Shown: positions 1,272 to 64,000 of the stretch, piece after piece
Position numbering within the stretch: the stretch's first letter is position 1
How the letters are laid out: each line of letters begins with the position of its first letter
Source of the DNA: Octopus sinensis
Taxonomy: Eukaryota
Direction of reading: 5' to 3'
Assembly: GCF_006345805.1 (NCBI RefSeq)
Contig: NW_021832570.1
Location: 1-64,000, forward strand
DNA length: 64,000 bases
Translations under genes and position numbers: made by a program
The notes under the pieces: model-generated
The model's input: only the letters and a program-made list of their open reading frames with translations
The model's database searches: none
Told to the model about the DNA's origin: nothing

Positions 1272-3923
<2,652 letters not shown>

Positions 3924-4439: not shown

Positions 4440-6920
4440 AAGAAGAGATAAAAAAAAATAAAAAGACCATGACAGCGGAATAGATTGGCGATTGTATGCT
4501 CATCAGCATGGCAAATGGGGCAAAAGGGGGAGATCGAGATGTCCATTTTGTGTGCATAGTGGTTTAATGAGGAGTGATGACCCAAGGAAACGAGCCGAAG
4601 CTTGTCTGAGCCGAACGGTCGAGATGCAATTCAGAACAGTGAACGTCAGGAGGAGGTTTATTGAGTACAGAGTTAGGCGTCAGCTTAAGAATAGCTGATG
4701 TGGATATCAAATTGTGAATTTTCCTCATCGGGTATGGACATTGGTGCAAGCCGTCGATTTTTGCAAGGATCCGGGAATATAGATTCGCCGGCGTGTTCTT
4801 CAGTGAACGAGAATTTCCGTTTAGCACATTTAGAGCAGAACATGGATGATAGGGAATTCGAGATGCAAATAAAAATTGCGCTCCTCTCATATTTAGATGA
4901 TTTTCAATTGGCAAAAGTTTGTTTCACAGTTTGAGGTTATCAATTTGGGTTGATTTCAGACACCAAGATATTGTGCGCATGGTTTTTTGGTTTTGTACTG
5001 ATTGAAGTGCCATTGTCGAGTTTATGGATAGACAGAGCGCCCGGCTTGGACTCGCATAACTTAATACGGGCCGTATGTATTGTTTGTAAACTCGTCTGAG
5101 GAGTGGCTTCTGGGCGCCTGTAATGTGACCACTTATTGCTTTTAGTATGTTTGTGCGTCTGTTTGCCTTGTCAGAAATGTTAGAGACATGCTTGTTGAAG
5201 GACATACAGTTGGATCAAAAGTAAGTCCGAGGATAGTAGGGGTTTTGCATTGTGGGAGGTCAGAACCAAAGAGAGATAACTTCGGGTGAAGGTTTGATTG
5301 TCTTCTGTCGGAAGAAAATAGGTGACCGATAATTTTGAGGGCGAAGCCTCGAGTCTGTTTTAAATGAACCAAATCTCAACGGAGTATAATTGTTGCTGGA
5401 TGTTGAGAGAGGCTGATATGTAATCTGCGTGTTTAGAAGCAATGATAATGTCATCTGCGTAAGATAAAGTCAAGTTGTTTGGGTCATTCGCCGGAAAGTC
5501 ATGTAAATATAAGTTGAACAGGGAAGGGGACAACACAGAACCCTGCGGTACCCCATTTGGAAGATAGCGTTGTTTTGAACAATGGTCCATAAGGGAGACG
5601 TATCCCATTCGACCCGATAAGAAGTTTGCAAGCCAGGATTTGAGGTTTGTTTAGGTCTGTCTTTAAAATTTTGTGATGAGTCCACACAGAGGGACGCTGT
5701 CAAACGTTGAAGATATCGATTGAAACTATTACTGTTCGTTTTGGGGGTCTCTTCTCATTGAAGCCGTCCAGCACAGATTGCGAATTTAGATTCCTCAGTT
5801 TTATAAAGGACCCGTTTCCATCGAATTGTTACGCGTCTTATAAGGGCGTTTACTTCGTGACTGTAACTTTGGGAGAATTTTGTATAATTCCTTGAGGAAT
5901 GAATTTTTTGGAGGGGAGATGATAAGTGCATTAAGATAATTGACTGCTAAATCAGTCAAACGAAAGTTGATAATGTCGAAATCATTCAATGATTTTTCTA
6001 GAGCGAGACAGTAGTCATTTCAGGAAGCTCTTTTGTAATTCGTATAACACGCCGTTGAATGTCGATGTTGGTTTTTGGGCATTCTCAATAATAATCGGTT
6101 TGTGATCAGAATTTAAGTCGTAAATGACCTTCCAAGAAGTAACTGGGGCCAGAATTGGAGTACACAGCGGGATGTCAGGAGAAAATTGCGTCGCCTTCCT
6201 TGACGGTTTTCTGATGTGAGATGAGGGATTGTTGAGGATAACTAAACCATCAATTGGTCGAATAGTAGAGATCCTCTTGACTTGAGAGATTGATTTTTTA
6301 GCTATATCGGGCTCTTTGCGTTCATATCACCACAAATAACGACATTGTTGAGAGACTGGAGGTTTTGAATAGAAGGGGTCCATCCATGAGGACATAACGA
6401 GTGAGGAGGTATGTATACATTGAGAGTCTCCTAGTTGATGACCCTGTAGAGACAGTTATAGCTGTCATTTCAATCACTTGATCGTTGCCAATTAGCGAGT
6501 AAGCTTGGGAGGTACAGTTAGTGAACGGGATGGATTTTTTGATAAGAGTTAGTAGGCCACCCCCATTTACAGAGCCCGGTCTGTCCCGACGGATGTATGA
6601 ATAACCAGGGAAATCTGGCAAGCGATTTTTGGCCGAGAGCTTTGTTTCTTGCACCAAAGCAATGTCCACGTCGTGCTTCTCCAGGAAGGAATAAAGTTCA
6701 GCAGTCTTCTGAGCAAGATACGTAATAGGTTCTTTTTGCTGGGGCCAGGATTTGGTTCAATGTCTCTGGAAAGTAGAAGGGTGAGTTTGATAAGCAAAGA
6801 GGTCCTTGGGAGCAACGGCTTCGCGCCTGCTCTGCTGCCACCGACGTCGCTGAATCGATCCGATCCGGCAGGGGAGTAGTTGTAGGTCTTTTCGTAGTAT
6901 AAAACTATCACCTGTCACGG
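4440..6920 (-). mobile_element. Vingi/ingi-like LINE (2A-like peptide, APE endonuclease, RT, C-terminal CCHC), frameshifted
   Basis: LLLSRDIEPNPGP (6741-6779); APE DIALVQETKL...YIRRDRPGSVNGGGLLTLIK; RT GVPQGSVLSPSLFNLY...YADD; thumb YKQYIRPVLSYAS; C-terminal GHHSSLNHYAHKM...FCPICHADEHTIANLFRC. Clade assignment is inferred from domain order. Confidence 0.85.
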
Positions 6921-12050: not shown

Positions 12051-13402
12051 AGAATTTTTATTTTCCTATTCGCTTGAATCGACCACTAAAGGAGAAGATA
12101 TTTTTCAAGCAATTTCTATGTTTTTTGACAGGGTTGGATTATCTTGGAATAATGTATGTTGTTGCACAACCGATGGAGCTCCAGCAATGCTTGGCTTTCA
12201 TTCTGGCTTTAGAGGCCAAGTTAGACTTGCTAACCAAGAAACGAAACATATGCATTGTATGCTACATCGATATGCACTTGCTGCAAAAACATTACCTTCA
12301 GATTTAAGATATGTTCTCGATGATGTCGTACATATAATAAATTATATTAAAAAGAGTGCTTTAAATTCGCGCATTTTCAGACTTATTTGCGAAGAATTTG
12401 AAAAGGATGGAAAGGCTTTGTTATTCCACACTGAGGTGAGATGGCTATCTTGGGGAAACTTCTTTGCCAGAGTTTTTTCTTTGAGGAATGAATTATCTGA
12501 ATATTTTATTCGCGAAAACAATTCCAAATCATCGGAATTTATTTCGAAATTAATGGATAGTTCATAGCTATCTAAACTTGCTTACTTGAGAGATGTCTTC
12601 TCTCGTATAAATTCACTCAACAAATCGCTTCAGGAAAGACATGAAACAATAATTGATTTTGTGGATAAAATTAAGTTTGTTAACTGTTTCATATTAATTA
12701 TTAGTGCTTTTTTGATGAAGTTAACACTGTGGAAAGAAAAAGTAAAACTAAATAATTTTACTAGTTTAAATCTTTTGAAGAACAATCTGTAAATATAGAT
12801 GCATTTGAAATCAAAAAAATAACCGAACTTATTTATGCACATTAACATATCTTCAACAAGAAGTAAATAAATACTTTCCAGAATTGAACGAAATTGATTT
12901 GAAATTCATTCGTACACCATTCAGTGTTGATCCACGTTTGGTCGATGAAAATATCGAAGAGGCTTATATTGACATGATCAATAATTCAAACGCAAGATTT
13001 GTATGAAAAACTTGCTTTATCAAGATTTTGGTGCGAAATGTGTAAGCATTATCCTTCCGTAAGCGCAAATGCATTAAATTTGTTGCTTATATTCCCGACA
13101 ACATATTTATGCGAACATGGCTTCTCAGCACTTCTCAATATAAAAATAATCATCGCGCAAGACTGAATATTGAAGATGACATCAGGGTTTGCTTGTCGAC
13201 AACCGAGCCTCTTATTGAAAAAATTGCCTCGAAAAAACAATATCAACCTTCTCACTAATTTTCTTTATTGATTTAATAATAAATTTTGTTTTTAGATAAG
13301 TAAAATTTTTTTGACAAAAAACTTAATAAATATGTAGGGGGTCCGCGAAATTTTTCATTTACTCACAAGGGGTCCGCAAACAAAAAAGGTTAAGAACCAC
13401 TG
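12051..13402 (+). mobile_element. hAT (Buster, ZBED5/SCAND3-like) transposase C-terminal two-thirds; right TIR present, left end deleted
   Basis: TTDGAPAMLG...HCMLHRYAL...LLFHTEVRWLS...PTTYLCEHGFSAL...KKQYQPSH*. Ends GGTTAAGAACCACTG at 13402. ACTTAAGT occurs at both 12043-12050 and 13403-13410 (TSD). 30-nt intron at 12675-12704. Confidence 0.9.
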
Positions 13403-26210: not shown

Positions 26211-29200
26211 TGTGACCGGTTTTATTTTGGACCAGGTTTTATTTTGGACCGATCGCAAATTTTTTTAATTTTGTTGACGAAAAGGCATATTTTGTAAAGA
26301 ATAACAAAAATCTTCGTTTTTTTGTTCGGAAGAGAGAGAACTTAAGCTAAAAACTATCAAAGTAAGATAATATATTGAATTTAAAGCTATTACATAATGA
26401 AAATCATTTTGGGCGTGATCGGATGTTAAGCCTATTAAGAAATAAAATTTACAGCGTCAAACGTTCTGAAATCTTCAATGTAATTAAATCATGTGTTGAG
26501 TGCCTTTTTGTTACTAATAAGAAAACGTAACTTTAACTTAAATTTGGATTTTAGTGTTAGGGTTAAAATTTTGTTTAGGGTTAAGGAAAAAATGTTTAGG
26601 GTTAGGGTTAAAAATTTGTTTAGGGTTAAGGTTAAAATGTTTAGGGTTAGTGTTAGGGTTAAAATTTTGTTTAGGGTTAAGGAAAAAATGTTTAGGATAA
26701 GGGTTAAAATGTTTAGGGTCAAGGAGAAAATGTTTAGGGTTAGGGTTAAAAATTTGTTTAGGGTTAAGGTTAAAATGTTTAGGGTTAGTGTTAGGGTTAA
26801 AATTTGTTTAGGGTTAAGGTTAAAATGTTTAGGGTTAGTGTTAGGGTTAAAATTTTGTTTAGGGTTAAGGAAAAAATGTTTAGGGTTAGGGTTAAAAATT
26901 TGTTTAGGGTTAAGGTTAAAATGTTTAGGGTTAGTGTTAGGGTTAAAATTTTGTTTAGGGTTAAGGAAAAAATGTTTAGGATAAGGGTTAAAATGTTTAG
27001 GGTCAAGGAGAAAATGTTTAGGGTTAGGGTTAAAAATTTGTTTAGGGTTAAGGTTAAAATGTTTAGAATTAGTGTTAGGATTAAAATTTTGTTTAGGGTT
27101 AAAGAAAAAATGTCTAGGGTTAGGGTTAAAAGTTTGTTTAGGGTTAGTGTTAGGATTAAAATTTTGTTTAGGGTTAAAGAAAAAATGTTTAGGGTTAGGG
27201 TTAAAAATTTGTTTAGGGTTAAGGTTAAAATGTTTAGGGTTAGTGTTAGGATTAAAATTTTGTTTAGGGTTAAAGAAAAAATGTTTAGGGTTAGGGTTAA
27301 AAATTTGTTTAGGGTTAAGGTTAAAATGTTTAGGGTTAGTGTTAGGGTTAAAATTTTGTTTAGGGTTAAGGAAAAAATGTTTAGGATAAGGGTTAAAATG
27401 TTTAGGGTCAAGGAGAAAATGTTTAGGGTTAGGGTTAAAAATTTGTTTAGGGTTAAGGTTAAAATGTTTAGGGTTAGTGTTAGGATTAAAATTTTGTTTA
27501 GGGTTAAAGAAAAAATGTTTAGGGTTAGGGTTAAAAATTTGTTTAGGGTTAAGGTTAAAATGTTTAGGGTTAGTGTTAGGATTAAAATTTTGTTTAGGGT
27601 TAAAGAAAAATGTTTAGGGTTAGGGGTTAAATTTTGTTTAGGTTAAGGTTAAAATGTTTAGGGTTGTGTTAGGATTAAAATTTTGTTTAGGGTTAAAGAA
27701 AAATGTTTAGGGTTAGGTTAAAAATTTGTTTAGGGTTAAGGTTAAAATGTTTAGGGTTAGTGTTTAGGGTTAAAATTTTGTTTAGGGTTAAAGAAAAAAT
27801 GTTTAGGGTTAGGGTAAAAATTTGTTTAGGGTTAAGGTTAAAATGTTTAGGTTAGTGTTAGGGTATAAAATTTTGTTTAGGGTTAAGGAAAAAATGTTTA
27901 GGGTTAGGGTTAAAAATTTGTTTAGGGTTAAGGTTAAAATGTTTGGGTTAGTGTTAGGGTAAAATTTTGTTTAGGGTTAGGAAAAAATGTTTAGGATAAG
28001 GGTTAAAATGTTTAGGGTCAAGGAGAAAATGTTTAGGGTTAGGGTTAAAAATTTGTTTAGGGTTAAGGTTAAAATGTTTAGGGTTAGTGTTAGGGTTAAA
28101 ATTTGTTTAGGGTTAAGGTTAAAATGTTTAGGGTTAGTGTTAGGGTTAAAATTTTGTTTAGGGTTAAAGAAAAAATGTTTAGGGTTAGGGTTAAAAATTT
28201 GTTTAGGGTTAAGGTTAAAATGTTTAGGGTTAGTGTTAGGGTTAAAATTTTGTTTAGGGTTAAGGAAAAAATGTTTAGGGTTAGGGTTAAAAATTTGTTT
28301 AGGGTTAAGGTTAAAATGTTTAGGGTTAGTGTTAGGGTTAAAATTTTGTTTAGGGTTAAGGAAAAAATGTTTAGGGTTAGGGTTAAAAATTGTTTAGGGT
28401 TAAGGTAAAATGTTTAGGGTTAGTGTTAGGGTTAAAATTTGTTTAGGGTTAAGGTTAAAATGTTTAGGGTTAGTGTTAGGGTTAAAATTTTGTTTAGGGT
28501 TAAAGAAAAAATGTTTAGGGTTAGGGTTAAAAATTTGTTTAGGGTTAAGGTTAAAATGTTTAGGGTTAGTGTAAGGATTAAAATTTTGTTTAGGGTTAAG
28601 GAAAAAATGTTTAGGATAAGGGTTAAAATGTTTAGGGTCAAGGAAAAATGTTTAGGGTTAGGGTTAAAATTTTGTTTAGGGTAAGGTTAAAATGTTTAGG
28701 GTTAGTGTTAGGGTTAAAATTTGTTTAGGGTTAAGGTTAAAATGTTTAGGGTTAGTGTTAGGGTTAAAATTTTGTTTAGGGTTAGGAAAAAATGTTTAGG
28801 GTTAGGGTTATTAAAAATTTGTTTAGGGTTAAGGTTAAAATGTTTGGGTTAGTGTTAGGGTTAAAATTTTGTTTAGGGTTAAGGAAAAAATGTTTAGGAT
28901 AAGGGTTAAAATGTTTAGGGTCAAGGAGAAAATGTTTAGGGTTAGGGTTAAAAATTTGTTTAGGGTTAAGGTTAAAATGTTTAGGGTTAGTGTTAGGATT
29001 AAAATTTTGTTTAGGGTTAAAGAAAAAATGTTTAGGGTTAGGGTTAAAAATTTGTTTAGGGTTAAGGTTAAAATGTTTAGGGTTAGTGTAAGGATTAAAA
29101 TTTTGTTTAGGGTTAAAGAAAAAATGTTTAGGGTTAGGGTTAAAAATTTGTTTAGGGTTAAGGTTAAAATGTTTAGGGTTAGTGTTAGGATTAAAATTTT

Positions 29201-32200
29201 GTTTAGGGTTAAAGAAAAAATGTTTAGGGTTAGAATTAAAAATTTGTTTAGGGTTAAGGTTAAAATGTTTAGGGTTAGTGTTAGGGTTAAAATTTTGTTT
29301 AGGGTTAAGGAAAAAATGTTTAGGATAAAGGTTAAAATGTTTAGGGTCAAGGAGAAAATGTTTAGGGTTAGGGTTAAAAATTTGTTTAGGGTTAAGGTTA
29401 AAATGTTTAGGGTTAGTGTTAGGATTAAAATTTTGTTTAGGGTTAAGGAAAAAATGTTAGGGTTAGGGTAAAATTTGTTTAGGGTTAAGGTTAAAATGTT
29501 TAGGGTTAGTGTTAGGATTAAAATTTTGTTTAGGGTTAAAGAAAAAATGTTTAGGGTTAGGTTAAAATTTGTTTAGGGTTAAGGTTAAAATGTTTAGGGT
29601 TAGTGTTAGGATTAAAATTTTGTTTAGGGTTAAAGAAAAAATGTTTAGGGTTAGGGTTAAAAATTGTTTAGGGTTAGGTTAAAATGTTTAGGGTTAGTGT
29701 TAGGGTTAAAATTTGTTTAGGGTTAAAGAAAAAATGTTTAGGGTTAGGGTTAAAAATTTGTTTAGGGTTAAGGTTAAAATGTTTAGGGTTAGTGTTATGG
29801 TTAAAATTTTGTTTAGGGTTAAGGAAAAAATGTTTAGGGTTAGGGTTAAAAATTTGTTTAGGGTTAAGGTTAAAATGTTTAGGGTTAGGTTAGGGTTAAA
29901 AATTTGTTTAGGGTTAAGGAAAAAATGTTTAGGATAAGGGTTAAAATGTTAGGGTCAAGGAGAAAATGTTAGGGTTAGGGTTAAAAATTTGTTAGGGTTA
30001 AGGTTAAAATGTTTAGGGTTAGTGTTAGGGTTAAAATTTGTTTAGGGTTAAGGTTAAAATGTTTAGGGTTAGTGTTAGGGTTAAAATTTTGTTTAGGGTT
30101 AAAGAAAAAATGTTTAGGGTTAGGGTTAAAAATTTGTTTAGGGTTAAGGTTAAAATGTTTAGGGTTAGTGTTAGGGTTAAAATTTTGTTTAGGGTTAAGG
30201 AAAAAATGTTTAGGGTTAGGGTTAAAAATTTGTTTAGGGTTAAGGTTAAAATGTTTAGGGTTAGTGTTAGGGTTAAAATTTTGTTTAGGGTTAAGGAAAA
30301 AATGTTTAGGGTTAGGGTTAAAAATTTGTTTAGGGTTAAGGTTAAAATGTTTAGGGTTAGTGTTAGGGTTAAAATTTGTTTAGGGTTAAGGTTAAAATGT
30401 TTAGGGTTAGTGTTAGGGTTAAAATTTTGTTTAGGGTTAAAGAAAAAATGTTTAGGGTTAGGGTTAAAAATTTGTTTAGGGTTAAGGTTAAAATGTTTAG
30501 GGTTAGTGTTAGGGTTAAAATTTTGTTTAGGGTTAAGGAAAAAATGTTTAGGATAAGGGTTAAAATGTTTAGGGTCAAGGAGAAAATGTTTAGGGTTAGG
30601 GTTAAAAATTTGTTTAGGGTTAAGGTTAAAATGTTTAGGGTTAGTGTTAGGGTTAAAATTTGTTTAGGGTTAAGGTTAAAATGTTTAGGGTTAGTGTTAG
30701 GGTTAAAATTTGTTTAGGGTTAAGAAAAAATGTTTAGGGTTAGGGTTAAAAATTTGTTTAGGGTTAAGGTTAAAATGTTTAGGGTTAGTGTTAGGGTTAA
30801 AATTTTGTTTAGGGTAAAGAAAAAATGTTTAGGGTTAGGGTTAAAAATTTGTTTAGGGTTAAGGTTAAAATGTTTAGGGTTAGTGTTAGGGTTAAAATTT
30901 TGTTTAGGGTTAAGGAAAAAATGTTAGGGTTAGGGTTAAAAATTTGTTTAGGGTTAAGGTTAAAATGTTTAGGGTTAGTGTTAGGTTAAAAATTTGTTTA
31001 GGGTTAAGGTTAAATGTTTAGGGTTAGTGTTAGGGTTAAAATTTTGTTTAGGGTTAAGAAAAAATGTTTAGGGTTAGGGTTAAAAATTTGTTTAGGGTTA
31101 AGGTTAAAATGTTTAGGGTTAGTGTTAGGGTTAAAATTTTGTTTAGGGTTAAGGAAAAAATGTTTAGGGTTAGGGTTAAAATTTGTTTAGGGTTAGGTTA
31201 AAATGTTTAGGGTTAGTGTTAGGGTTAAAATTTTGTTTAGGGTAAGGAAAAAATGTTTAGGGTTAGGGTTAAAAATTTGTTTAGGGTTAAGGTTAAAATG
31301 TTTAGGGTTAGTGTTAGGGTTAAAATTTGTTTAGGGTTAAGGTTAAAATGTTTAGGGTTAGTGTTAGGGTTAAAATTTTGTTGAGGGTTAAAGAAAAAAT
31401 GTTTAGGGTTAGGGTTAAAAATTTGTTTAGGGTTAAGGTTAAAATGTTTAGGGTTAGTGTTAGGGTTAAAATTTTGTTTAGGGTTAAAGAAAAAATGTTT
31501 AGGGTTAGGGTTAAAAATTTGTTTAGGGTTAAGGTTAAAATGTTTAGGGTTAGTGTTAGGGTTAAAATTTTGTTTAGGGTTAAGGAAAAAATGTTTAGGG
31601 TTAGGGTTAAAAATTTGTTTAGGTTAAGGTTAAAATGTTTAGGGTTAGTGTTAGGTTAAAAATTTGTTTAGGGTTAAGGTTAAAATGTTTAGGGTTAGTG
31701 TTAGGGTTAAAATTTTGTTTAGGGTTAAAGAAAAAATGTTTAGGGTTAGGGTTAAAATTTGTTTAGGGTTAGGTTAAAATGTTTAGGGTTAGTGTTAGGG
31801 TTAAAATTTTGTTTAGGGTTAAAGAAAAAATGTTTAGGGTTAGGGTTAAAAATTTGTTTAGGGTTAAGGTTAAAATGTTTAGGGTTAGTGTTAGGGTTAA
31901 AATTTTGTTTAGGGTTAAGGAAAAAATGTTTAGGGTTAGGGTTAAAAATTTGTTTAGGGTTAAGGTTAAAATGTTTAGGGTTAGTGTTAGGGTTAAAATT
32001 TGTTTAGGGTTAAGGTTAAAATGTTTAGGGTTAGTGTTAGGGTTAAAATTTTGTTTAGGGTTAAAGAAAAAATGTTTAGGGTTAGGGTTAAAAATTTGTT
32101 TAGGGTTAAGGTTAAAATGTTTAGGGTTAGTGTTAGGGTTAAAATTTTGTTTAGGGTTGAGGAAAAAATGTTTAGGATAAGGGTTAAAATGTTTAGGGTC

Positions 32201-33249
32201 AAGGAGAAAATGTTTAGGGTTAGGGTTAAAAATTTGTTTAGGGTAAGGTTAAAAGTTTAGGGTTAGTGTTAGGGTTAAAATTTTGTTTAGGGTTAGGAAA
32301 AAATGTTTAGGGTTAGGGTTAAAATTTGTTTAGGGTTAAGGTAAAATGTTTAGGGTTAGTGTTAGGGTTAAAATTTGTTTAGGGTTAAGGTTAAAATGTT
32401 TAGGGTTAGTGTTAGGGTTAAAATTTTGTTTAGGGTTAAAGAAAAAATGTTTAGGGTTAGGGTTAAAAATTTGTTTAGGGTTAAGGTTAAAATGTTTAGG
32501 GTTAGTGTTAGGGTTAAAATTTTGTTTAGGGTTAAGGAAAAAATGTTTAGGGTTAGGGTTAAAAATTTGTTTAGGGTTAAGGTTAAAATATTTAGGGTTA
32601 GTGTTAGGGTTAAAATTTTGTTTAGGGTTAAGGAAAAAATGTTTAGTGTTAGGGTTAAAAATTTGTTTAGGGTCAAGGTTAAAATGTTTAGGGTTAGGGT
32701 TAAAATTTTGTTTAGGGTTAAGGAGAAAATGTTTAGGATAAGGGTTAAAATGTTTAGGGTCAAGGAGAAAATGTTCAGGGTTAAGGTTGAAATTTTGTTA
32801 GTTGAGATTAAGATTTTTATAATTAAAATTAAATTAAGTTTTTTACCGTTTGGACAACTATTAAAAATAGGGGTTTTAAAATCAAATTAAAAATTAGGGT
32901 GTTTTAGAATTAGGATTTTGGGTGTTAGGGCTATTATTAGAATGTATATGTGTTAGGGTTATATTTTTAAAATTTTTAATTAATAGAATTATATTTAGTT
33001 TTTAATTTTTTTAGAATGGAAGACCAATTTTTAAATAAATATCGTAACGGCAACGCTGTAATCATCAAATTTGTTGATTGGTTGCTTTGTGCATACTTCC
33101 ATTTTTTAAAAAACTAAATGAAATCAAGAAAAAACTATACAAAAGTATAATTTAACATTAACTCATATATTTTTAGTGGAATAAAATTTTTATTATTGAT
33201 TTTTTTCTCGGTCCAAAATAAAACCTGGTCCAAAATAAAACCTGTGACA
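26211..33249 (+). mobile_element. Ginger-like DNA transposon (7,039 bp) whose interior is a telomere-like satellite
   Basis: 42-bp TIRs matching at 40/42 (26211-26252 and 33208-33249), TGT...ACA ends. TSD ATTAT (26206-26210 and 33250-33254). HHCC remnant ELKLKTIK/LLHNENHFGRDRMLSLLRNKIYSVKRSEIFNVIKSCVEC with a 25-nt intron at 26362-26386. Confidence 0.9.
26551..32790 (+). repeat. TTAGGG-based complex satellite, ~96-bp monomer (30+21+24+21-bp subunits), ~6.2 kb
   Basis: The monomer carries six TTAGGG, each in TTAGGGTTA context, separated by A/T tracts. A 42-bp variant block (TTTAGGATAAGGG...GGGTCAAGGAGAAAATG) recurs about 11 times. Single orientation throughout. Confidence 0.97.
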
Positions 33250-40947: not shown

Positions 40948-41895
40948 CAGGAGTGTCAAACATGGGGCCCTCAAAAGACATAAGTGTAATCCTCAGCGTA
41001 CTTTGGCAAACATAAGTGCGGTCTGATTTAATACAAAAAATTAATTTTTATTTTTTTTATATTTAATTAAAATTTTTAATGATAATAGAATTAAAATGAA
41101 ACAATTCGTTATCTACAATTTGTATTTAATTGTATTGTATTTTTAAATCGTGTTTGTCAATGTCTCGTACTTTTTCTGGACTAAAATAGAAACGGTGCTT
41201 GAAAGATGAACGGAGAGTGTTTCAAGATAAATGGGAATTTCTCTATTTTTGCACAAGGGTTGATGGAAAAATACATTGTTTGATATATAACAAGTTTATC
41301 GCTATACCGAAAGAATACAACCCAATGAGGCATTATCAATCTAATCATCTATCATACAATTATTTCGAACGTATTAAATTGCTTATTAACCAAGAAGGTC
41401 CAATTCGCGTTTCAAAGCTAAATGAATTGCGAAAAAATTTATCTGCGTTACAGGCTCATTTCACAAAAAGTCATAACCAATGTACTGCATTAGTCACTGC
41501 AAGGTATGAAATCAGCACAATGCCTGCAGTAAATGGAACTTCAAAAAGTTTGCAACAAAAATCATTGCTATGTTTGGTTCGACATATAGTGAACAGCTTT
41601 TTTCATTTATGAAATTGACAAAAACTGCTCAAAGAACAAGACTAACTGATAAACATTTATCCTCTTTAATACAAGTCGGAACTACACGAATAGGTCAGCC
41701 TGACATCAAAAATTGTATCTAAAAAAAGATGTCAATCCTCTGGAAGCAGTTTTCACCAAAATTAAAGGACGATGATTGAATAATTTAGTTTCTCTTATTT
41801 GGTTATTCATCATAATAAATATCATAATTAATCTTCCCTTAATGAGAAATTATTATAAATGCGGCCTTCGAAGCGAAATGAGTTTGACACCCCTG
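40948..41895 (+). mobile_element. Internally deleted hAT (SPIN/GTF2IRD2-like), 948 bp
   Basis: TIR CAGG(A/G)GTGTCAAAC. Perfect TSD CTGTAGAG (40940-40947 and 41896-41903). The N-terminal zinc-finger ORF 41199-41612 is fused to a dimerization-domain remnant (MKLTKTAQRTRLTDKHL). Confidence 0.92.
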
Positions 41896-43440: not shown

Positions 43441-43815
43441 AATATATTTATTCGAATCAAATAGTTTTTCTAGAGAGTAAAAAAACAGGTATAAAAATTA
43501 AACTTTGGGTATTCCAACAATCTGAAAATAAACAACGAATACAGTTTTCAGCCTAATTACTTTAAATGATGAGCTATTCAATCATAAACAAATAGTATTG
43601 TAATACGGGAGTGAGAGCTATAATGACTCACAATCACATACCTATGAGAACTACTTCCAACCATTTAAATTGCTATTTAGTATGAATTATTAATATCAAA
43701 ATTTTGTACTCATATGTTAACATAAGAAAAAACCAATAAATAAGTAACCCTAAACTGAGTATAAAAGTCCAATAAAATATTTATTTTTATCAAAAATCAA
43801 AATAAAAAAGTAGAA

Positions 43816-43892
43816 GGGTACAAAAAGTCAGATGAATCATATAAATCACATACTTTGTGAAGAATAATCACATAATCTGACTCCATGCACCC
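43816..43892 (-). promoter_or_regulatory. Putative eukaryotic SECIS element in the SPS2 3'UTR
   Basis: Lower stem GGGUGCA/UGUACCC; helix I GUCAGAU/AUCUGAC; core GUGA (43868-43871) and GA (43837-43838); helix II 7/10 paired; apical AAA (43854-43856) 11 nt from the core. Folded by eye. Confidence 0.75.
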
Positions 43893-43914
43893 AGGAAGCA
43901 CTGCTCAATACTTC

Positions 43915-45271
43915 CTACCATAATTGATTTTCATGATCTTTCGCGGGAACTTCAATGACTCTTACACTATCCTCTATCCTCGCTGTACGGTTCCCCTTCT
44001 GAACCACTCCAATAATCCACGCCTGGTACCCTTCCTGCCTTTGAAGATCCTTACAAAAACTCGCCGCTTGTTGTTGTGGTAAAATTATCAAAAGCCCACC
44101 TAAAAACAATAAAATTTCAAAAACAAAAAAACCCGAAGTTTCAGGACAACGACCACTCAACAGCGGAAAAGGACTCCCACACGATTTATTAAACGAGTGT
44201 AATTTAGCAATAACAGGAATGTTGTAAATCAAAAAGGAGACTTGATTGGTCTGGCAACGTGCCAAATTCTCCGCATGGCCTAAAAGACCATAACCCGTCA
44301 CATCTGTTGCCCCATGTGAATTATAACGTTTCATTAGAATTGAAGCTAACATTTACCCAATTAATAAAACCTTCTCGATTAAGTCTTGTCATTGAGTCAA
44401 TTGCACGTTTATAAGCTTTAATCACATCACTTTGACGGGCTACACTCTTGAGTTTACTCCACTTGTCAGGCCGATTGAGCCACAAGTACATATTTATAGC
44501 CAATTGGGTTCCCAGAGGTTTCGTAAGAACCAACACGTCTCCCTCTACTGCACTTGTTGGCCTAAAATAAATAACAAAAATAACATTAAATAGTCTTTAC
44601 ATATCGAACTTGCAACACCTCCAATGACCATCCAAGGATTAAAAGTAACACTTCCACCCGAAATTTCAATTCCCGCCAATTTAGCTTGATCCTATATAAT
44701 ATTACGTAATCTAAAAGCCACTCTAAATCCACTACGAATCAAATCCACCACAATACTCCTCTCAGCCCCAACAAGTCCTGTACTGACACCCAAAATCATT
44801 TTCAAACAGTCACAATTAGAGACTCCCAAAGCGTAGAGATCGCTGAGGACATTAGAACATGCTATTCTCCCCTAAAAGTTATAAACGACCAAAATAATAC
44901 CATTTTGTAAGGATCGTCAATATTTGGGTAGAAAAAATCAGTAGTTTGTATTAGACTGAGACCTCCGTACCGCAAGGGGACAATACTGCAGTCAATTCCT
45001 TGAATATATAATGTAAGTTACCCATTAAGGATCTGGAAGAATTTAGATCCATGGGGATGTTCGGCTTCTGTCCCTCCAGTAGTCTGAGCAGGACTGACTG
45101 GGGGACTTTGCACCCTCATCCCTTTAGTTCGGTGTATTTTGTGAGAGCAAAATCTCTACGTAAGCCGTATTTCGTTGGGTCGAAACCGACTTCTTGTTTA
45201 TCCTAAAATGATGATATTATATTTAAAATATATGTTTTATTAAAGGTTGAAAAATAACACGGCACAACCAT
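43915..45271 (-). CDS. SEPHS2: Selenophosphate synthetase 2 (selenoprotein, UGA-Sec)
   Basis: FDPTKYGL...[16 protein letters not shown] (TGA at 45116-45118), [62 protein letters not shown]. Introns at 44999-45021, 44872-44900, 44692-44721, 44562-44584, 44346-44370 and 44100-44132. The first intron (45203-45268) and the start codon are tentative. Confidence 0.93.
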
Positions 45272-45625
45272 CAAAAAAATTAGATAATATCTTATTTGAT
45301 TATTAAAATTTTAATTAAACAAATAAAAAAATTATAATTTTTTATTTAAAGTTAATGAAATTCGGTTGAAAGCGGCAAACCTGCTAAACACTTTTTCCGA
45401 TAAAGAGATTATCCCAAAAGCCTGGAACAACATCATAAAGTCATCGGCAATCCATCTACGGGAGGTTCGTCCTGAAAATCCCCGTCCGTACCGAAAATGC
45501 GTCGGGACAACGGCGGAACATCGGGAGAGGCTGCGCGAACTGCTGAGGGAGGCTGGGATCACCTGAATTCTTCTTTCTTTTCGCTATGACGGTGGTTTTC
45601 TGGTTCAATAAATAAAAATAAATAA

Positions 45626-46096: not shown

Positions 46097-46790
46097 CAGG
46101 TGTTCTCAACCGTGGGCGAATCGCCCCCCTAGGGGCGATAATTTTGTACAGGGGGGCGATAATTTTGTACAAGGGGGCGATAATATATTTAGTAAAATAT
46201 TCGAATTTTAATATAATACAGTATTTATACATGTTAATTTTAATAATGTTTCAGATTTATTATATTTTTTCTATAGTGTTTATCCTTAAATTTATATTTT
46301 AAAGATGTTTTATTTTATATTTATTCTAAAGATGTCTTCTCGCTCAATAAGAAAAGTCGTCATTATCAAAACGAATATTTAAAATATGGGTTTATTCAAA
46401 GTACTGAAGATACAAAAACAGCCTTATTGTCTATTTGTCAATGTTCTTTCTCAAATGAGGCGATGAAGCCATCACGATTACAGGATCATCTAAAACGCAA
46501 GCACCCGGATAAAATGTCAAAGCCGATTGAATATTTTCAAAATTTAAAATACAATTTTGAAAATAAGAAAACGATCAAATCGTTATTCACAAAGCCAGTA
46601 CATGATGGTTTATTACATTTGATTTATTATTTTATATTTTGATTTTTGAGTTATATACAAAAAACAACCAATTAAGGGACAATGCCCAAAAATTTTTAAA
46701 TTGTATGTGGACAAGGGGGCGATAAAATTTCAAAGGGGGGCGATAAAATATCTAAGGGGGCGATGAACAAAAAAAGGTTGAGAATGCCTG
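46097..46790 (+). mobile_element. Non-autonomous hAT (Buster/ZBED5-like N-terminus), 694 bp
   Basis: Left end CAGGTGTTCTCAACC, right end GGTTGAGAATGCCTG. Perfect TSD TTCTAATG (46089-46096 and 46791-46798). GGGGCGAT subterminal repeats. Zinc-finger remnant EYLKYGF...CSFSNEAMKPSRLQDHLKRKH. Confidence 0.92.
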
Positions 46791-50265: not shown

Positions 50266-50380
50266 GGCAACACATTTTGAATTCGACGAATTAAAAAAGA
50301 TTTTATCTTTCTCATTAAAACATCAGCTTATTAATTGATTTTAAAGTCATTATTAATCATCATTAAAATTATGAATAAAT

Positions 50381-50950
50381 TTGGGGGAACTGTTGACGAG
50401 TACGGTTTGCATCCCCTCGCTTGCCGGCGGAGTGCCGGTCGTGCCCCCCGTCACAGTGAACTCAACTCAGTCATACAGAGAGCCCTCGCTTCAGCAGGCA
50501 TCCCGTCAATCCTTGAACCTGTTGGATTGGATAGAGGGGATGGCAAACGCCCTGACGGCATGTCCACCTTCCCCTACGAGCAGGGGAAATCCCTTATTTG
50601 GGATTCTACCTGCTCGGACACGTTCTCGCTGGGAAATCTCGCTCTGTCCGCCGCCAATCCTGGGCACGCTTCCAGGCAGGCCGAGGAGCGAAAGATTCTC
50701 AAGTACGGCCACCTCTCCAACTCGCTGCTCTTTACTCCAATTGCCGTGGAGTCCTCCGGGATCTTCGGTCCCAAGACACTCCGCTTCCTTCGCTCGCTCG
50801 GTCGACGGATTTCAAGGACTAGTCACGACCCAAGAGAGTTTTCTTGGCTCCTGGAACGTCTGTCGATTGCTGTGATCTGAGGGAACGGCTTCGCCATTCG
50901 CGAGGCTGGTCGGGTGTCTCGTGAGGCCTTTAATTAACTTAGCTATCTTT
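50381..50950 (+). mobile_element. CRE-clade non-LTR retrotransposon, 5'-truncated (CCHC knuckle plus RLE)
   Basis: GTVDEYGLHPLACRRSAGRAPRHSELN...LEPVGLDRGDGKRPDG...LIWDSTC...PIAVESSG...WLLERLSIAV. Confidence 0.9.
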
Positions 50951-56405: not shown

Positions 56406-56865
56406 TATCCAATCAAAGCCATTATACTTATTGCCTCTATGTTTAAAGGAATTGAAACTTTAGCATAATCGAACTTGTCTGTTTCGGTAAAGAAAATGAT
56501 AATCAGCTTCATCTTTGTAGTATTATAAGGAAAAAAATTAAAGCCTGTTAAATCAAGGAGATTTAAATATAGGCAAATTGAAATTTACATGACTAATTTA
56601 AATTTTATTTGCCTCTATCTTTTAAGAAATCTAAACAGTAGCATAATCGAATTTGTCAGTTTCGGCAGTTAAAAGAATCAATTATGTAAATCTCTAATAA
56701 TTTTTGCTTTTTCCTTTTTAGTGGTTTCAAAATCTGATAATTGCACAGTCTATTCATGGTCGATAACAATTAGAGCTTTTATTTTATTTTTTTAACGAAA
56801 ATTTAACAAAAAAGAATTTATGTCATCGAAAAAAGATAGCTAAGCTAATTAATGGCCTCACGAGG

Positions 56866-58215
56866 CTTGAAGGTTGTGGAGGACCTCATCATGTGAGTCG
56901 AGGACTTTCTTGTCGTTCATTTTAACAAAAACGCAGAAAATATTTTTTTTTAATTTTTTGGCTTGAAGGTTTTGGGGGACCACATCATGTGAGTCGAGGA
57001 CTTTCTTGTTGTTCATTTTAACAAAAACGCAGAAAATAATTTTTTTTAATTTTTTGGCTTGAAGGTTTTGAGGGACCACATCATGTGAGTCGAGGACTTT
57101 CTTGTTGTTCATTTTAACAAAAACGCAGAAAATATTTTTTTTTAATTTTTTGGCTTGAAGGTTTTGAGGGACCACATCATGTGAGTCGAGGACTTTCTTG
57201 TTGTTCATTTTAACAAAAACGCAGAAAATAATTTTTTTAATTTTTTACCTTGAAGGTTTTGGGGGACCACATCATGTGAGTCGAGGACTTTCTTGTTGTT
57301 CATTTTAACAAAAACGCAGAAAATATTTTTTTTAATTTTTTACCTTGAAGGTTTTGGGGGACCACATCATGTGAGTCGAGGACTTTCTTGTTGTTCATTT
57401 TAACAAAAACGCAGAAAATAATTTTTTTAATTTTTTAGCTTGAAGGTTTTGGGGGACCACATCATGTGAGTCGAGGACTTTCTTGTTGTTCATTTTAACA
57501 AAAACGCAGAAAATAATTTTTTTTAATTTTTTGGCTTGAAGGTTTTGGGGGACCACATCATGTGAGTCGAGGACTTTCTTGTTGTTCATTTTAACAAAAA
57601 CGCAGAAAATAATTTTTTTAATTTTTTGGCTTGAAGGTTTTGGGGGACCACATCATGTGAGTCGAGGACTTTCTTGTTGGTCATTTTTAACAAAAACGCA
57701 GAAAATAATTTTTTTAATTTTTTAGCTTGAAGGTTGTGGGGACCACATCATGTGAGTCGAGGACTTTCTTGTTGTTCATTTTAACAAAAACGCAGAAAAT
57801 ATTTTTTTTTAATTTTTGGCTTGAAGGTTTTGGGGGACCACATCATGTGAGTCGAGGACTTTCTTGTTGTTCATTTTAACAAAAACGCAGAAAATAATTT
57901 TTTTTAATTTTTGGCTTGAAGGTTTTGGGGGACCACATCATGTGAGTCGAGGACTTTTTTGTTGTTCATTTTAACAAAAACGCAGAAAATAATTTTTTTA
58001 ATTTTTTGGCTTGAAGGTTTTGGGGGACCACATCATGTGAGTCGAGGACTTTCTTGTTGTTCATTTTAACAAAAACGCAGAAAATAATTTTTTTTAATTT
58101 TTTGGCTTGAAGGTTTTGGGGGACCACATCATGTGAGTCGAGGACTTTCTTGTTGTTCATTTTAACAAAAACGCAGAAAATTGACTTGAAGGTTTTGGGG
58201 GACCTCATCATCGAG
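56866..58215. repeat. Tandem minisatellite, 94-96-bp unit, ~14 copies
   Basis: CTTGAAGG anchors at 56866, 56962, 57058, 57154, 57249, 57344, 57439, 57535, 57630, 57726, 57820, 57915, 58010, 58106 and 58185. Length variation lies mainly in the T tracts. Confidence 0.97.
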
Positions 58216-58929: not shown

Positions 58930-60103
58930 GTTTTAATTTCACAACGTCGAAGATAATGGAAAAAATTATTTTCAATCGTTTATCGGCTTACGTGGAACAA
59001 AATATATACTCGCGGAGAAACAGTGGGGTTTTAGACCTGGTCGTTCAACCGGTCACTGTTTCTCGCTTCTTGAGGAAGAACTGTCTCGGGCCAAACTCCA
59101 TAAAGCCTGCCTAACGGCGGTCTGCTTGGACGTCTGCAAGGCTTTGACAGTGTCTGGCACTTGGGGTTGCTAGATAAAGTAGCGGAGTTGGGTGCTGGGC
59201 GAAAAAACTGTCAGATGGCTAAAGGGCTTCTTGTGCGAGAGAAAATCGTTCATTCGTTGTGGAAATCTGTTATCGAAGGCCGTGAATCTGAGAAGAGGTG
59301 TTCCTCAGGGATCGGTTCTCAGCCCCTTGCTCTTCATTTATTTCTGGCCGACGTCCCGAAACCACATTTTCCTACGAGCAGACTAATTATCTACGCGGAC
59401 GATATCTTGGTTACGGATGTCTCGAAGTGGGGACCCCGACACAGAAGAAGGTTGTCCTGGAGCAGACTAGAACCGTACTTGGAGGAACTTGAAATCTGGT
59501 GCAATGGTAAAGGCTTGAATCTCGCTCTGGACAAAAGTACCATTTGTTGGATTTCAATGGGTCGTGACAAAAAACCGACTTTCGAGGATTATGGGAACCT
59601 GATTATATCGAAGAACCTACGTTACCTGGGAGTAACTATAGACCCCACCGGGTCATACAAACCCCATGTGCATGCAAAGCGGAAACAAGGAGCGAAAATC
59701 CTAAAAGGACTGAGGCGTTTTTGTCTAAGCGCAGAAACGTTTCTACACATCTACCAGACTTGTGTTCAGCCACTAATAATCTATGGTTCGGAGGGCTGGT
59801 ACCAAACTGATGAAAGGGACCTTCTAATCGCCAAACTCAAAAAAACCAGACGATTTGCCATCAAACTGGCATTCGGCCTGGAGCTCAGCAGTCCGCTGGA
59901 GGACCTGCATGAGCGGAGTGTTGACACGATAGACGCGATCCTGGCAAAACTCGAATTCGCTGAGGGAGATAAGACAGTCTCCCGGGGCAAAACCGAAGTT
60001 GAGACCTTCGTGGCTCTCGTTATCAAGCCCCCTAAGCTCTAATTCCTCGGCCACTTTTCTTTTGGAGCTATTGTATTAAATAAACCATATTCTATTCTAT
60101 TCT
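58930..60103 (+). mobile_element. 5'-truncated LINE (RT plus 3' tail)
   Basis: EKIIFNRL, QWGFRPGRST, LDVCKAFDSVWH, GVPQGSVLSPLLF, YADD, YLGVTID and YQTCVQPLIIYG, ending in AATAAA plus an (ATTCT)n tail. Confidence 0.88.
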
Positions 60104-62159: not shown

Positions 62160-64000
62160 CTAGTTTCTACTCTCTACCTTTTCGTTAGAAAAAGTTGTTA
62201 TAGGTCGCGTAGTTTTAAACGAAGTGTCCCGACAGCAGTCATTCATGGGACCAACTAAACAAATGGGCTTCACTGTCCACATTTGTACAATACTTCTCAC
62301 ACAATTAACAACCCAAAAGAATATCTTACGTTGCGTCATGTGGTTCACCAGTTGTTACAACTGTGGAGGCGCACAGAATGCTCCTAAAGCATTCGAGAAA
62401 AGAACCATTCACTCTTTCCAGCTGGAATTATCCAGACGACAATCTCGGGATCTCAGCCCCCGATGGACGAAAGGCTCGAGCATTCTGCTTTCGGGCGATG
62501 TTAAGGAGAATCCAGGATCACATCTAACCATACTCCAACTGAACATCAATGGAATAAGAGGGAAAGTTCTTGAATTACGGACATACCTCAAAAAACACAA
62601 CATCGATGTAGCTGCCTTTCAAGAGATCAGATTAACACCCTCCTCTATTACTCCCTCATTCCCGGGATATAACTGTATCCGCTTAGATTGGTTAAACTGA
62701 CTTGGCGGAGGCCTTCTGTTTATTATCAAAAACGAATTGCACTATACGGACCCCTCGGATGACTTTATTCAGGACGGCGTATCAGAAATATCTGGAATTA
62801 CGTTGATTACTAAATTTGGAAAGATAACTATTGTCAACATATATGTTCCACCCCTCCTGTCTTGTCCAAAGGGATTCAACCAAAACTTCTCAAAGCTATC
62901 CAATTTAAAGAACCTTTTAATTTGCGGAGATTTGAACGCAAAGCATCCGACTTGGCTTAAATCCCAACGGGCAGACTCAAGAGGATGGTCTCTATTGAAA
63001 CAACTCTCTGCCATGTCTTTCCTTAACAATCCGAAGACCCACACTGAAACACCTTATAAGGATACCGAACACTTAACATCTACGGACATTACACTATCCT
63101 CAACTAACTTATCCTCAGCCATTTCATGGGCAGTAGACTACGATCTTAATTCAGATCACAATCCAATCATCATCAGGATTAAGAAAGCCCTTCCTCGTAC
63201 GAACAAAGCAATGTTCTTGTTCGATTACAAGAGCGCAAACTGGGAGGGATATGTTAACTTCATCGACGCAATGCTGCAAAACTTTGATAGTAAACTGTTA
63301 AAATCAATCCACGGAGCTGTCAAGTGCCTAAATGAGGCGACTTTGCTGGGTAGAAAGCTATTTATTCCAAAATAAACTTACCATCACTTCGACGAAAATC
63401 TCGACCAGGAGACAAAAATCCTTATCAGAAAAAGAAACTTTCTTAAAAAGAATCTAATTTCTATTCCCAGAGGAAGAAAAGAAATAAAGAACCTCAACGA
63501 TACCATCACTAAGAAAAATCGTCCACTATCTTACTTACGTCGGACAAGAGACTCGGAAGCCGTACTGCTGATTTTTTTCTGGAGAACGAAAAGATCCCAT
63601 TCACGAAGAACCCTAAAATTCTGGGAATCACTTTTGACACCCGCATGTGCTTTACTGCCCATCTAGAGAAGAACATTGGATCCAGTCAATGAAAAATTGG
63701 ACTAATCAAATCGATATTTGGCGGACTAAAGAAACCGTTCCCGGCTCTCGGCACTCTCTGCAAATAATTCATCGAACCTACAATTGGCTATGTCTGCGTC
63801 GCATGGGGTACTAATCTCTCATGGTCTAACCATCTTAAAATTGAGCCACACTATGCCGAGCCACGGCTAGCAAAACGAAAATTTCCAACTTGAACAACAT
63901 TATCCCAAGTCCGCTGGACCACCTTATTAAGAAAGATGGAAATGGCTTCTTAGGACCACCTGCCAAAGAACTAAGACCTTAACAACCCAAAACACATCAA
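62160..64000 (+). mobile_element. Vingi/ingi-like LINE (2A-like, APE, RT C-terminus), RT core deleted; runs off the window
   Basis: LLSGDVKENPGS (62485-62520); TILQLNINGI...AAFQEIRL; GDLNAKH; TDITL...SDHNPI; then PKILGITFDTRMCFTAHL. Confidence 0.85.

Follow-up and report, generated by a model that had tools for sequence, protein, structure and literature searches.

Gene structure and placement of the in-frame UGA

The 64,000-nt stretch analysed here, positions 1 to 64,000 of contig NW_021832570.1 (the window), carries on its minus strand a gene for selenophosphate synthetase (SPS) that contains a single in-frame UGA and is followed by a hairpin resembling a selenocysteine insertion sequence (SECIS). 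By reading the sequence and anchoring the exon ends, we resolved the gene between positions 45202 and 43915 into seven exons and six GT..AG introns, whose lengths are given in order below. The G+C content is 43% in the exons and 21% in the introns. The spliced frame comprises 374 codons, is open save for one TGA, and ends at the TAG at 43917-43915. Because a mechanical list of open reading frames (ORFs) gives this gene as mere fragments, it could be called hidden. The features of the gene are as follows.

45269-45271, minus strand: probable start codon ATG, forming an ATG-only (or ATG-GTT) mini-exon with a GT donor; the nearest ATG that joins exon 1 in phase 0
45203-45268, minus strand: putative first intron of 66 nt (63 nt with the donor at 45265), ending in ttttag
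45022-45202, minus strand: exon 1, which carries the putative selenocysteine (Sec) codon
45116-45118, minus strand: in-frame TGA, the sole TGA of the coding sequence, at the Sec/Cys/Thr catalytic position as placed by alignment with human SPS1
44901-44998, minus strand: exon 2, preceded by a 23-nt intron (44999-45021)
44722-44871, minus strand: exon 3, preceded by a 29-nt intron (44872-44900)
44585-44691, minus strand: exon 4, preceded by a 30-nt intron (44692-44721)
44371-44561, minus strand: exon 5, preceded by a 23-nt intron (44562-44584)
44133-44345, minus strand: exon 6, preceded by a 25-nt intron (44346-44370)
43915-44099, minus strand: exon 7, including the TAG stop (43917-43915), preceded by a 33-nt intron (44100-44132)
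43780-43785, minus strand: AATAAA polyadenylation signal, 130 nt past the stop and 31 nt past the hairpin

An in-frame TAG lies directly 5′ of exon 1, so that a splice or trans-splice acceptor, and hence an upstream exon, is required. The initial annotation had taken the ATG at 45271 as the start codon; this ATG is present and is followed by GT, and its use is weighed below with the rest of the interpretation. Translation from it would give M+DKQEVG ahead of FDP, an N-terminal length that presumably agrees with that of human SPS1. Alternatively, a spliced leader could in principle provide the AUG. No second Sec-site exon, of the alternative kind seen in Ciona, was found within the 64-kb window.

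To identify the encoded protein, the pieces N- and C-terminal of the TGA were searched separately. The C-terminal piece (345 residues) matched the NCBIfam family TIGR00476 selD with 193.6 bits (cut-off 125) and, in Pfam, both AIRS (36.8; cut-off 24) and AIRS_C (54.7; cut-off 23.1). Pfam returned no family for the N-terminal piece, which is too short at 28 residues. Structures of human SPS1 were matched by the C-terminal piece over residues 30-376 (336 aligned, E = 4e-125), with the human residues Lys32, Asp69, Asp87, Asp110 and Asp265 all identical in the window protein. The role of these residues, among which the aspartates bind metal and ATP, is established structural knowledge for SelD/SPS enzymes. 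Homology to human SPS1 stops nine residues short of the TAG. On the strength of these sequence matches, we assign the gene to the SelD/SPS family.

The TGA had been proposed to occupy the catalytic Sec position, and the alignment bears this out to the residue. The first residue of the C-terminal piece aligns with Gly30 of human SPS1 (9hjt), and the TGA is therefore residue 29, a site that vertebrate SPS1 fills with Thr, SPS2 with Sec and some lineages with Cys. It falls within the Gly-rich loop, in the context T-E-L-K-G-TGA-G-C-K-V-P, and the motif LKG-TGA-GCKVPQ recurs at the matching place in all five control SPS genes. On the other side of the codon, the last 22 residues of the N-terminal piece, ending at the TGA, align without gaps to five SPS2-UGA N-termini (41-55% identity, E = 3e-7 to 4e-5). 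Since these 22 codons match the controls in frame, coding conservation spans the TGA. The gene model, the family, the residue-exact UGA and the frame conserved across it are matters of observation.

Two departures from the standard code were considered and rejected. UGA as a reassigned sense codon is ruled out by codon use, the TGA occurring once in the gene while all five Trp codons are TGG and all ten Cys codons are TGT or TGC. A ciliate-type code, an idea that came from the 23-33 nt introns, is ruled out as well: the frame needs intron removal, TAA and TAG are abundant in the introns and absent from the exons, homology stops at a TAG, and the window holds metazoan-type retrotransposons.

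A further possibility is that an SPS gene encoding Cys (TGT/TGC) at this site has recently acquired the TGA by nonsense mutation, or shows it through an error of the assembly. TGA is one base away from either Cys codon, the base is read from the assembly alone, and SPS2-Cys forms are known in nematodes (PMC4561486) and were found in mites in our SPS tree. The gene is otherwise undamaged, however, with six GT..AG introns, an open frame, and the catalytic Lys and four Asp residues kept. Moreover, the change would have had to strike the one codon at which dozens of further SPS genes have TGA, and the same gene also has the SECIS-like hairpin and the stem-loop described below. We consider a pseudogene or a sequence error very improbable.

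RNA structures of the transcript

The initial annotation had described a SECIS-like hairpin 23 nt after the stop codon, with a GUGA rather than an AUGA core and a 3x3 pyrimidine mismatch in helix II. The hairpin was recovered at 43892-43816, its core reads G-UGA-U at 43871-43867, and in helix II UCU stands opposite UUU. It folds with -29 kcal/mol (z = -4.5), a value that none of 200 shuffles equalled. The SECIS form of the fold has -27.7 kcal/mol, compared with -29.0 kcal/mol for the minimum free energy (MFE) structure, and is thus 1.3 kcal/mol dearer. The parts of the hairpin are listed here in the order in which they are transcribed.

43816-43892, minus strand: putative SECIS element, type-I-like, 77 nt, beginning at nucleotide 23 after the TAG
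43892-43886 / 43822-43816 (7 bp) and 43884-43875 / 43833-43824 (10 bp), minus strand: helix I
43874-43872, minus strand: 5′ internal loop UAU; the 3′ internal loop is UC
43871-43867, minus strand: 5′ core G+UGA+U, opposite the 3′ core UGAU at 43839-43836
43866-43856 / 43850-43840, minus strand: helix II, 11 positions, made up of 3 bp, a 3x3 UCU/UUU mismatch (positions 4-6) and 5 bp
43855-43851, minus strand: apical loop AAGUA, 5 nt, containing AAG

With an internal loop of 3+1 / 2 nt, the hairpin at 43892-43816 satisfies the SECIS spacing rules and has both the UGAN/KGAW quartet and the unpaired AA(R). Its UGAU/UGAU pairing fits the core consensus UGAN/KGAW used by SECISearch3 (PMC3753652), and its 4 + 11 positions and AAG fit the rule derived for human SECIS elements, i.e., a helix 2 of 14-15 positions and AAA/G (PMC2761289). 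GUGA_AA is a documented SECIS variant; it predominates in the green algae Chlamydomonas and Ostreococcus and accounts for 12 of 21 elements in the sponge Amphimedon, including that of SPS (PMC3473315).

We then asked how often such a hairpin would be met by chance, using an ungapped SECIS-pattern scanner of our own build, which is conservative and missed some of the control SECIS elements. The hairpin was the best of 15 loose candidates on both strands (128 kb), with a helix I of 10 bp, 8/11 positions paired in helix II and -15.9 kcal/mol. Equally strong matches numbered seven in 5.12 Mb of sequence from forty block-wise dinucleotide shuffles (~1.4 per Mb), and the chance expectation of a match that strong is ~4e-4 per 300-nt 3′ untranslated region (UTR), on one strand. 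On the control SPS2 loci, the scanner placed the SECIS 234-567 nt past the stop. A covariance model was also trained on five arthropod-type SPS2 SECIS elements, the window being left out. Limited to the 300 nt past the stop, this model found the hairpin with 12.4 bits (E = 0.01), end to end and in the register that had been parsed by hand. Since a SECIS is expected in just this stretch, we take the restricted result as modest support.

In one control transcript (L025, 1615-1694), a SECIS candidate lies 288 nt past the stop of a UGA-containing SPS; its helix II has the layout of the window hairpin, 3 bp being followed by three U.U mismatches in a row and then by 4 bp. Separately, a small 8-bp hairpin (GAAGUAUU-GAGC-AGUGCUUC) at 43895-43914 on the minus strand occupies the 22-nt spacer that separates the TAG from the SECIS-like hairpin.

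Could the 3′ hairpin be something other than a SECIS that adjoins the gene by coincidence, such as an antisense C/D-box snoRNA, a miRNA-like hairpin or a small inverted repeat? Its long perfect lower stem looks generic, and sub-threshold plus-strand matches to Rfam families were obtained for SNORD28 (17.5 bits), snoTBR7 (14.2 bits) and mir-154 (15.8 bits). The Rfam cut-offs, however, are 45-52 bits (50 for SNORD28), the E values are near 1 even on a 97-nt search, and the matches reuse GAUGA/CUGA motifs that belong to any kink-turn hairpin. The minus-strand reading, in turn, meets every SECIS spacing rule at once. These points make a coincidental hairpin extremely improbable. Of the specific candidates, an antisense C/D-box snoRNA at 43827-43883 (plus strand) was rejected, its far-sub-threshold matches being judged kink-turn noise, and a repeat or transposon end was ruled out on the grounds that none of the 14-mers in the hairpin has a second copy within the window.

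A second structure lies just downstream of the UGA, at the position of the selenocysteine redefinition element (SRE), which Mariotti et al. (2015; PMC4561486) describe for every eukaryotic SPS gene that contains a UGA. Two features are distinguished.

45110-45115, minus strand: GGG-UGC hexanucleotide, directly 3′ of the UGA and at the same time the Gly-Cys codons
45070-45106, minus strand: SRE-type stem-loop pairing the KVPQ codons with the LLEG codons, 10 bp with one bulge and a 4-bp apical extension

In the 86 nt from 45125, this stem-loop is the MFE structure at -34 kcal/mol (z = -3.6) and makes up 66% of the ensemble. A stem is found at the matching codons in all five control SPS2-UGA genes, and in a gap-free alignment of the six genes 92.6% of the cells pair in register, compared with 28-61% when the alignment is slid. 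Covariation was not significant (two pairs covary; 58 of 500 shuffles did equally well), and the stem arms are therefore largely set by the amino-acid sequence. Judged by its position and pairing, the stem-loop probably corresponds to the SRE. As structures, both the 3′ hairpin and the post-UGA stem-loop are present with SECIS- and SRE-like anatomy.

The same region bears on an alternative that the initial annotation had already raised, namely a UGA-containing SPS1-type gene read through without Sec, as in some insects. The gene would then be a paralogue of the SPS1-UGA type known from Hymenoptera and some Paraneoptera, its UGA would be read as a standard residue with the help of GGG-UGC and the stem-loop, and the 3′ hairpin would be irrelevant. 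GGG-UG[C/U] after the UGA is described as enhancing readthrough; it is ultraconserved among the SPS1-UGA genes of insects and missing from their SPS2 (PMC4561486). The hexanucleotide does follow the UGA in the window, a strong stem-loop lies downstream, and the upper stem of the SECIS-like hairpin is weak. Nevertheless, TGA-GGG-TG[T/C] was present in every non-insect UGA-containing SPS gene that we fetched, including those with a clear SECIS. Since GGG-UGC encodes the conserved Gly-Cys and is common to the non-insect controls, it does not discriminate between the two readings, and we dropped it as a sign of readthrough. Furthermore, the fold is not the three-stem hymenopteran readthrough element (HRE) with the UGA at its apex; the MFE structure is one extended stem-loop downstream of the UGA. 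A complete SECIS-like hairpin 23 nt past the stop would be expected by chance at ~4e-4 to 1e-2. The window protein also lies outside the insect SPS1 clade in a tree of 27 SPS proteins, and the 23-33 nt introns (PMC13644364) and a TTAGGG-type satellite both speak against an insect. A remaining point in favour of readthrough is that many UGA-SPS metagenome transcripts lack a SECIS detectable by the scanner, so that SECIS-less forms may be commoner than described. Taken together, the SECIS-like element, the lack of an HRE and the position outside the insect SPS1 clade disfavour readthrough without Sec, which we regard as improbable.

With regard to those transcripts, the metagenome and metatranscriptome SPS contigs with TGA-GGGTGT designated L010-L016, L023, L026-L031 and L035-L037 showed no SECIS by the ungapped scanner in 0.2-2.3 kb of 3′ flank. 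Either the scanner missed their SECIS elements or UGA-containing SPS genes without a SECIS extend beyond Hymenoptera and Paraneoptera.

Genome context and lineage

In the tree of 27 SPS proteins, the terminal branch of the window protein measures 1.77, ~24 times the median of 0.074, and the protein falls outside all arthropod and other groups. The second gene of the window, MCM6 (~1357-3920, plus strand), has eight junctions that are GT..AG introns of 22-30 nt. As ultra-short introns occur in MCM6 as well as in SPS, they are a property of the genome and not of the SPS gene. The MCM6 core is 64-67% identical to that of many phyla, and in the MCM6 tree the window protein again sits on a long, unplaced branch. 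Neither protein has a near relative in the databases, the SPS protein reaching 62% identity at best, and both an exact look-up of the ORFs and a scan of metagenomes failed to bring up anything nearer. The source is thus a fast-evolving animal. A survey of 51 animal genomes detected introns shorter than 30 bp in myxobolid myxozoans and Dicyema japonicum alone (PMC13644364). Our literature search found no paper linking selenoproteins to Myxozoa or Dicyema.

The initial annotation had spoken of a compacted genome. This holds for the introns, at 23-33 nt in SPS and 22-30 nt in MCM6, but not for the window as a whole, which is gene-poor and rich in repeats, with abundant transposon debris and a 6-kb satellite. 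Besides the two genes, we found non-LTR retrotransposon fragments, hAT-like ORFs and the satellite, as listed below together with smaller observations.

3299-3365, plus strand: junction in MCM6 with an unclean 67-nt gap; a stretch encoding VEPRHIKEA fits conserved MCM6 but is out of frame, and the gap may reflect an assembly error of one base or a micro-exon flanked by unusual splice sites
26551-32801: satellite of ~6.2 kb, periodic at 51 and 96 nt and composed of degenerate TTAGGG/TTAAGG units, an interstitial telomere-like repeat whose plus strand is almost free of C (GC skew near +1)
59161-60042, plus strand; 62224-63375, plus strand; 6322-6911, minus strand; 50335-50880, plus strand: non-LTR retrotransposon fragments (RVT_1, Exo_endo_phos_2, EEP endonuclease)
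12118-12567, 41199-41612 and 46427-46642, all plus strand: ORFs resembling remnants of hAT/ZBED-type transposases, one with a weak match to the Spin-doc zinc finger (E = 0.0026) and the other two without a Pfam match
56858-57208, minus strand: ORF in which a 32-residue unit (MNNKKVLDSHDVVPQNLQAKKLKKNIFCVFVK) is repeated in tandem ~3.5 times; at the DNA level the repeat measures ~96 nt
45366-45566: G+C-rich patch that adjoins the SPS gene on its upstream side; both strands have overlapping ORFs (66-76 aa) without a family match, and the patch could represent a promoter region or the debris of transposons

Interpretation of the in-frame UGA

We propose, with a probability of about 80%, that the gene is a functional SPS2 (SEPHS2) gene of a fast-evolving animal with ultra-short introns, in which the UGA is recoded to Sec by means of a SECIS and an SRE. 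The family score, the alignment of the UGA, the conservation on both sides of it, the SRE and the SECIS-like hairpin all argue for the SPS2 selenoprotein gene that had been suggested at the outset. According to this proposal, the single in-frame UGA of the mRNA, which lies at the catalytic position within the Gly-rich loop near the N-terminus, would be recoded to Sec in translation. Through the kink-turn SECIS 23 nt past the TAG, the mRNA would attract SBP2 together with the Sec-specific elongation factor and its Sec-tRNA(Sec), while the SRE stem-loop, which starts 9 nt past the UGA, would slow termination and so aid recoding. The resulting enzyme would contain Sec and would itself produce selenophosphate, from which Sec synthesis draws its selenium. 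The residue inserted at the UGA is predicted to be Sec rather than another amino acid, and the trans-acting machinery would be encoded elsewhere in the genome.

Several observations weigh against this proposal. When the covariance model was run on the whole window, the hairpin came sixth with E = 2.2, amid AT-rich noise; the model is weak, giving just 15.4 bits to a real SECIS on which it had not been trained. No Rfam SECIS family was found on the hairpin, either in the whole window at gathering thresholds or in three permissive scans. However, Rfam also missed the control SECIS elements, including a fully paired textbook one scanned alone (97 nt), and its silence on the hairpin is therefore uninformative. 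The upper stem is weak (-3.7 kcal/mol) and has three consecutive pyrimidine mismatches; SECISearch3 downgrades consecutive mismatches in helix 2 and filters out apical loops that are too short (PMC3753652), and the loop here has 5 nt. No orthologue was close enough for an analysis of SECIS covariation, the best matches having 55-62% identity in the protein databases and the metagenome loci at most ~59-72% per segment. No Sec machinery (tRNA-Sec, EEFSEC, SBP2, PSTK, SEPSECS) was visible in the 64-kb window, in which neither a tRNA nor any Rfam family was matched. Finally, the start of the protein at the ATG of 45271-45269 is inferred.

SPS2-Sec serves as the standard genomic marker of selenoprotein production (PMC4561486). 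Since an intact SPS2-Sec gene with a SECIS has this significance, the animal is predicted to keep the whole Sec pathway.

A more specific version of events is conceivable, although we hold it to be rather unlikely. A highly reduced parasitic lineage, with a dicyemid- or myxobolid-like genome, could have this gene as its only and undivided SPS; the gene would then use Sec by way of a minimal, lineage-specific SECIS and in addition rely on SECIS-independent readthrough through GGG-UGC and the strong SRE. A 'dual function' of this kind, i.e., Sec insertion together with readthrough, has been proposed for the unduplicated SPS2 of metazoans (Mariotti et al., PMC4561486). Were this so, the gene would provide the first evidence of Sec use in such a lineage, and its SECIS would be a stripped-down one that had probably co-evolved with a divergent SBP2.

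Under the preferred reading, in which the UGA is recoded to Sec in an SPS2 gene, the gene is of an ordinary kind. It leaves the knowledge of SPS2 and of Sec decoding unchanged, and it is of note mainly for the unusual genome in which it lies. Its minimal SECIS, with a GUGA core, a tiny apical loop and three stacked pyrimidine mismatches, would be a natural test of the least helix II that is needed. The combination of an in-frame stop with introns shorter than 30 nt also means that ordinary annotation would truncate or miss the gene, making it a useful case for curation.

Comparison with known systems

The closest solved structure is that of human SPS1 (SEPHS1; PDB 3FD5, 9HJT), with which the window protein shares Lys32 and the Asp residues that bind metal and ATP. 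Human SPS1 differs in having Thr where the window gene has UGA, and in having no SECIS. The insect SPS1-UGA genes (Hymenoptera, Rhodnius, Pediculus) share with the window gene the codon at which the UGA stands, and in both GGG-UG[C/U] and a stable local RNA structure come after it. Unlike these genes, the window gene has a SECIS-like element, has no three-stem HRE, and falls outside the insect SPS1 clade.

With the GUGA_AA elements of Amphimedon queenslandica, Chlamydomonas and Ostreococcus (PMC3473315), the window hairpin shares the G just 5′ of the UGA quartet and the apical AA. In those organisms GUGA is found in most SECIS elements, whereas the window organism is known from one SECIS alone.

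Compared with the SPS2-Sec genes of metazoans (SEPHS2; PMC4561486), the window protein is divergent, being 55-62% identical to its best matches, and the introns of its gene measure 23-33 nt. The window SECIS is also minimal by comparison: it lies 23 nt past the stop, has a GUGA core, a 5-nt apical loop, no helix III and three consecutive mismatches, whereas the arthropod control SPS2 genes have a fully paired type-II SECIS 234-567 nt downstream. In family, domain layout, the UGA residue within LKG-U-GCKVPQ, the SRE and a kink-turn SECIS in the 3′ UTR, however, the window gene resembles metazoan SPS2-Sec.

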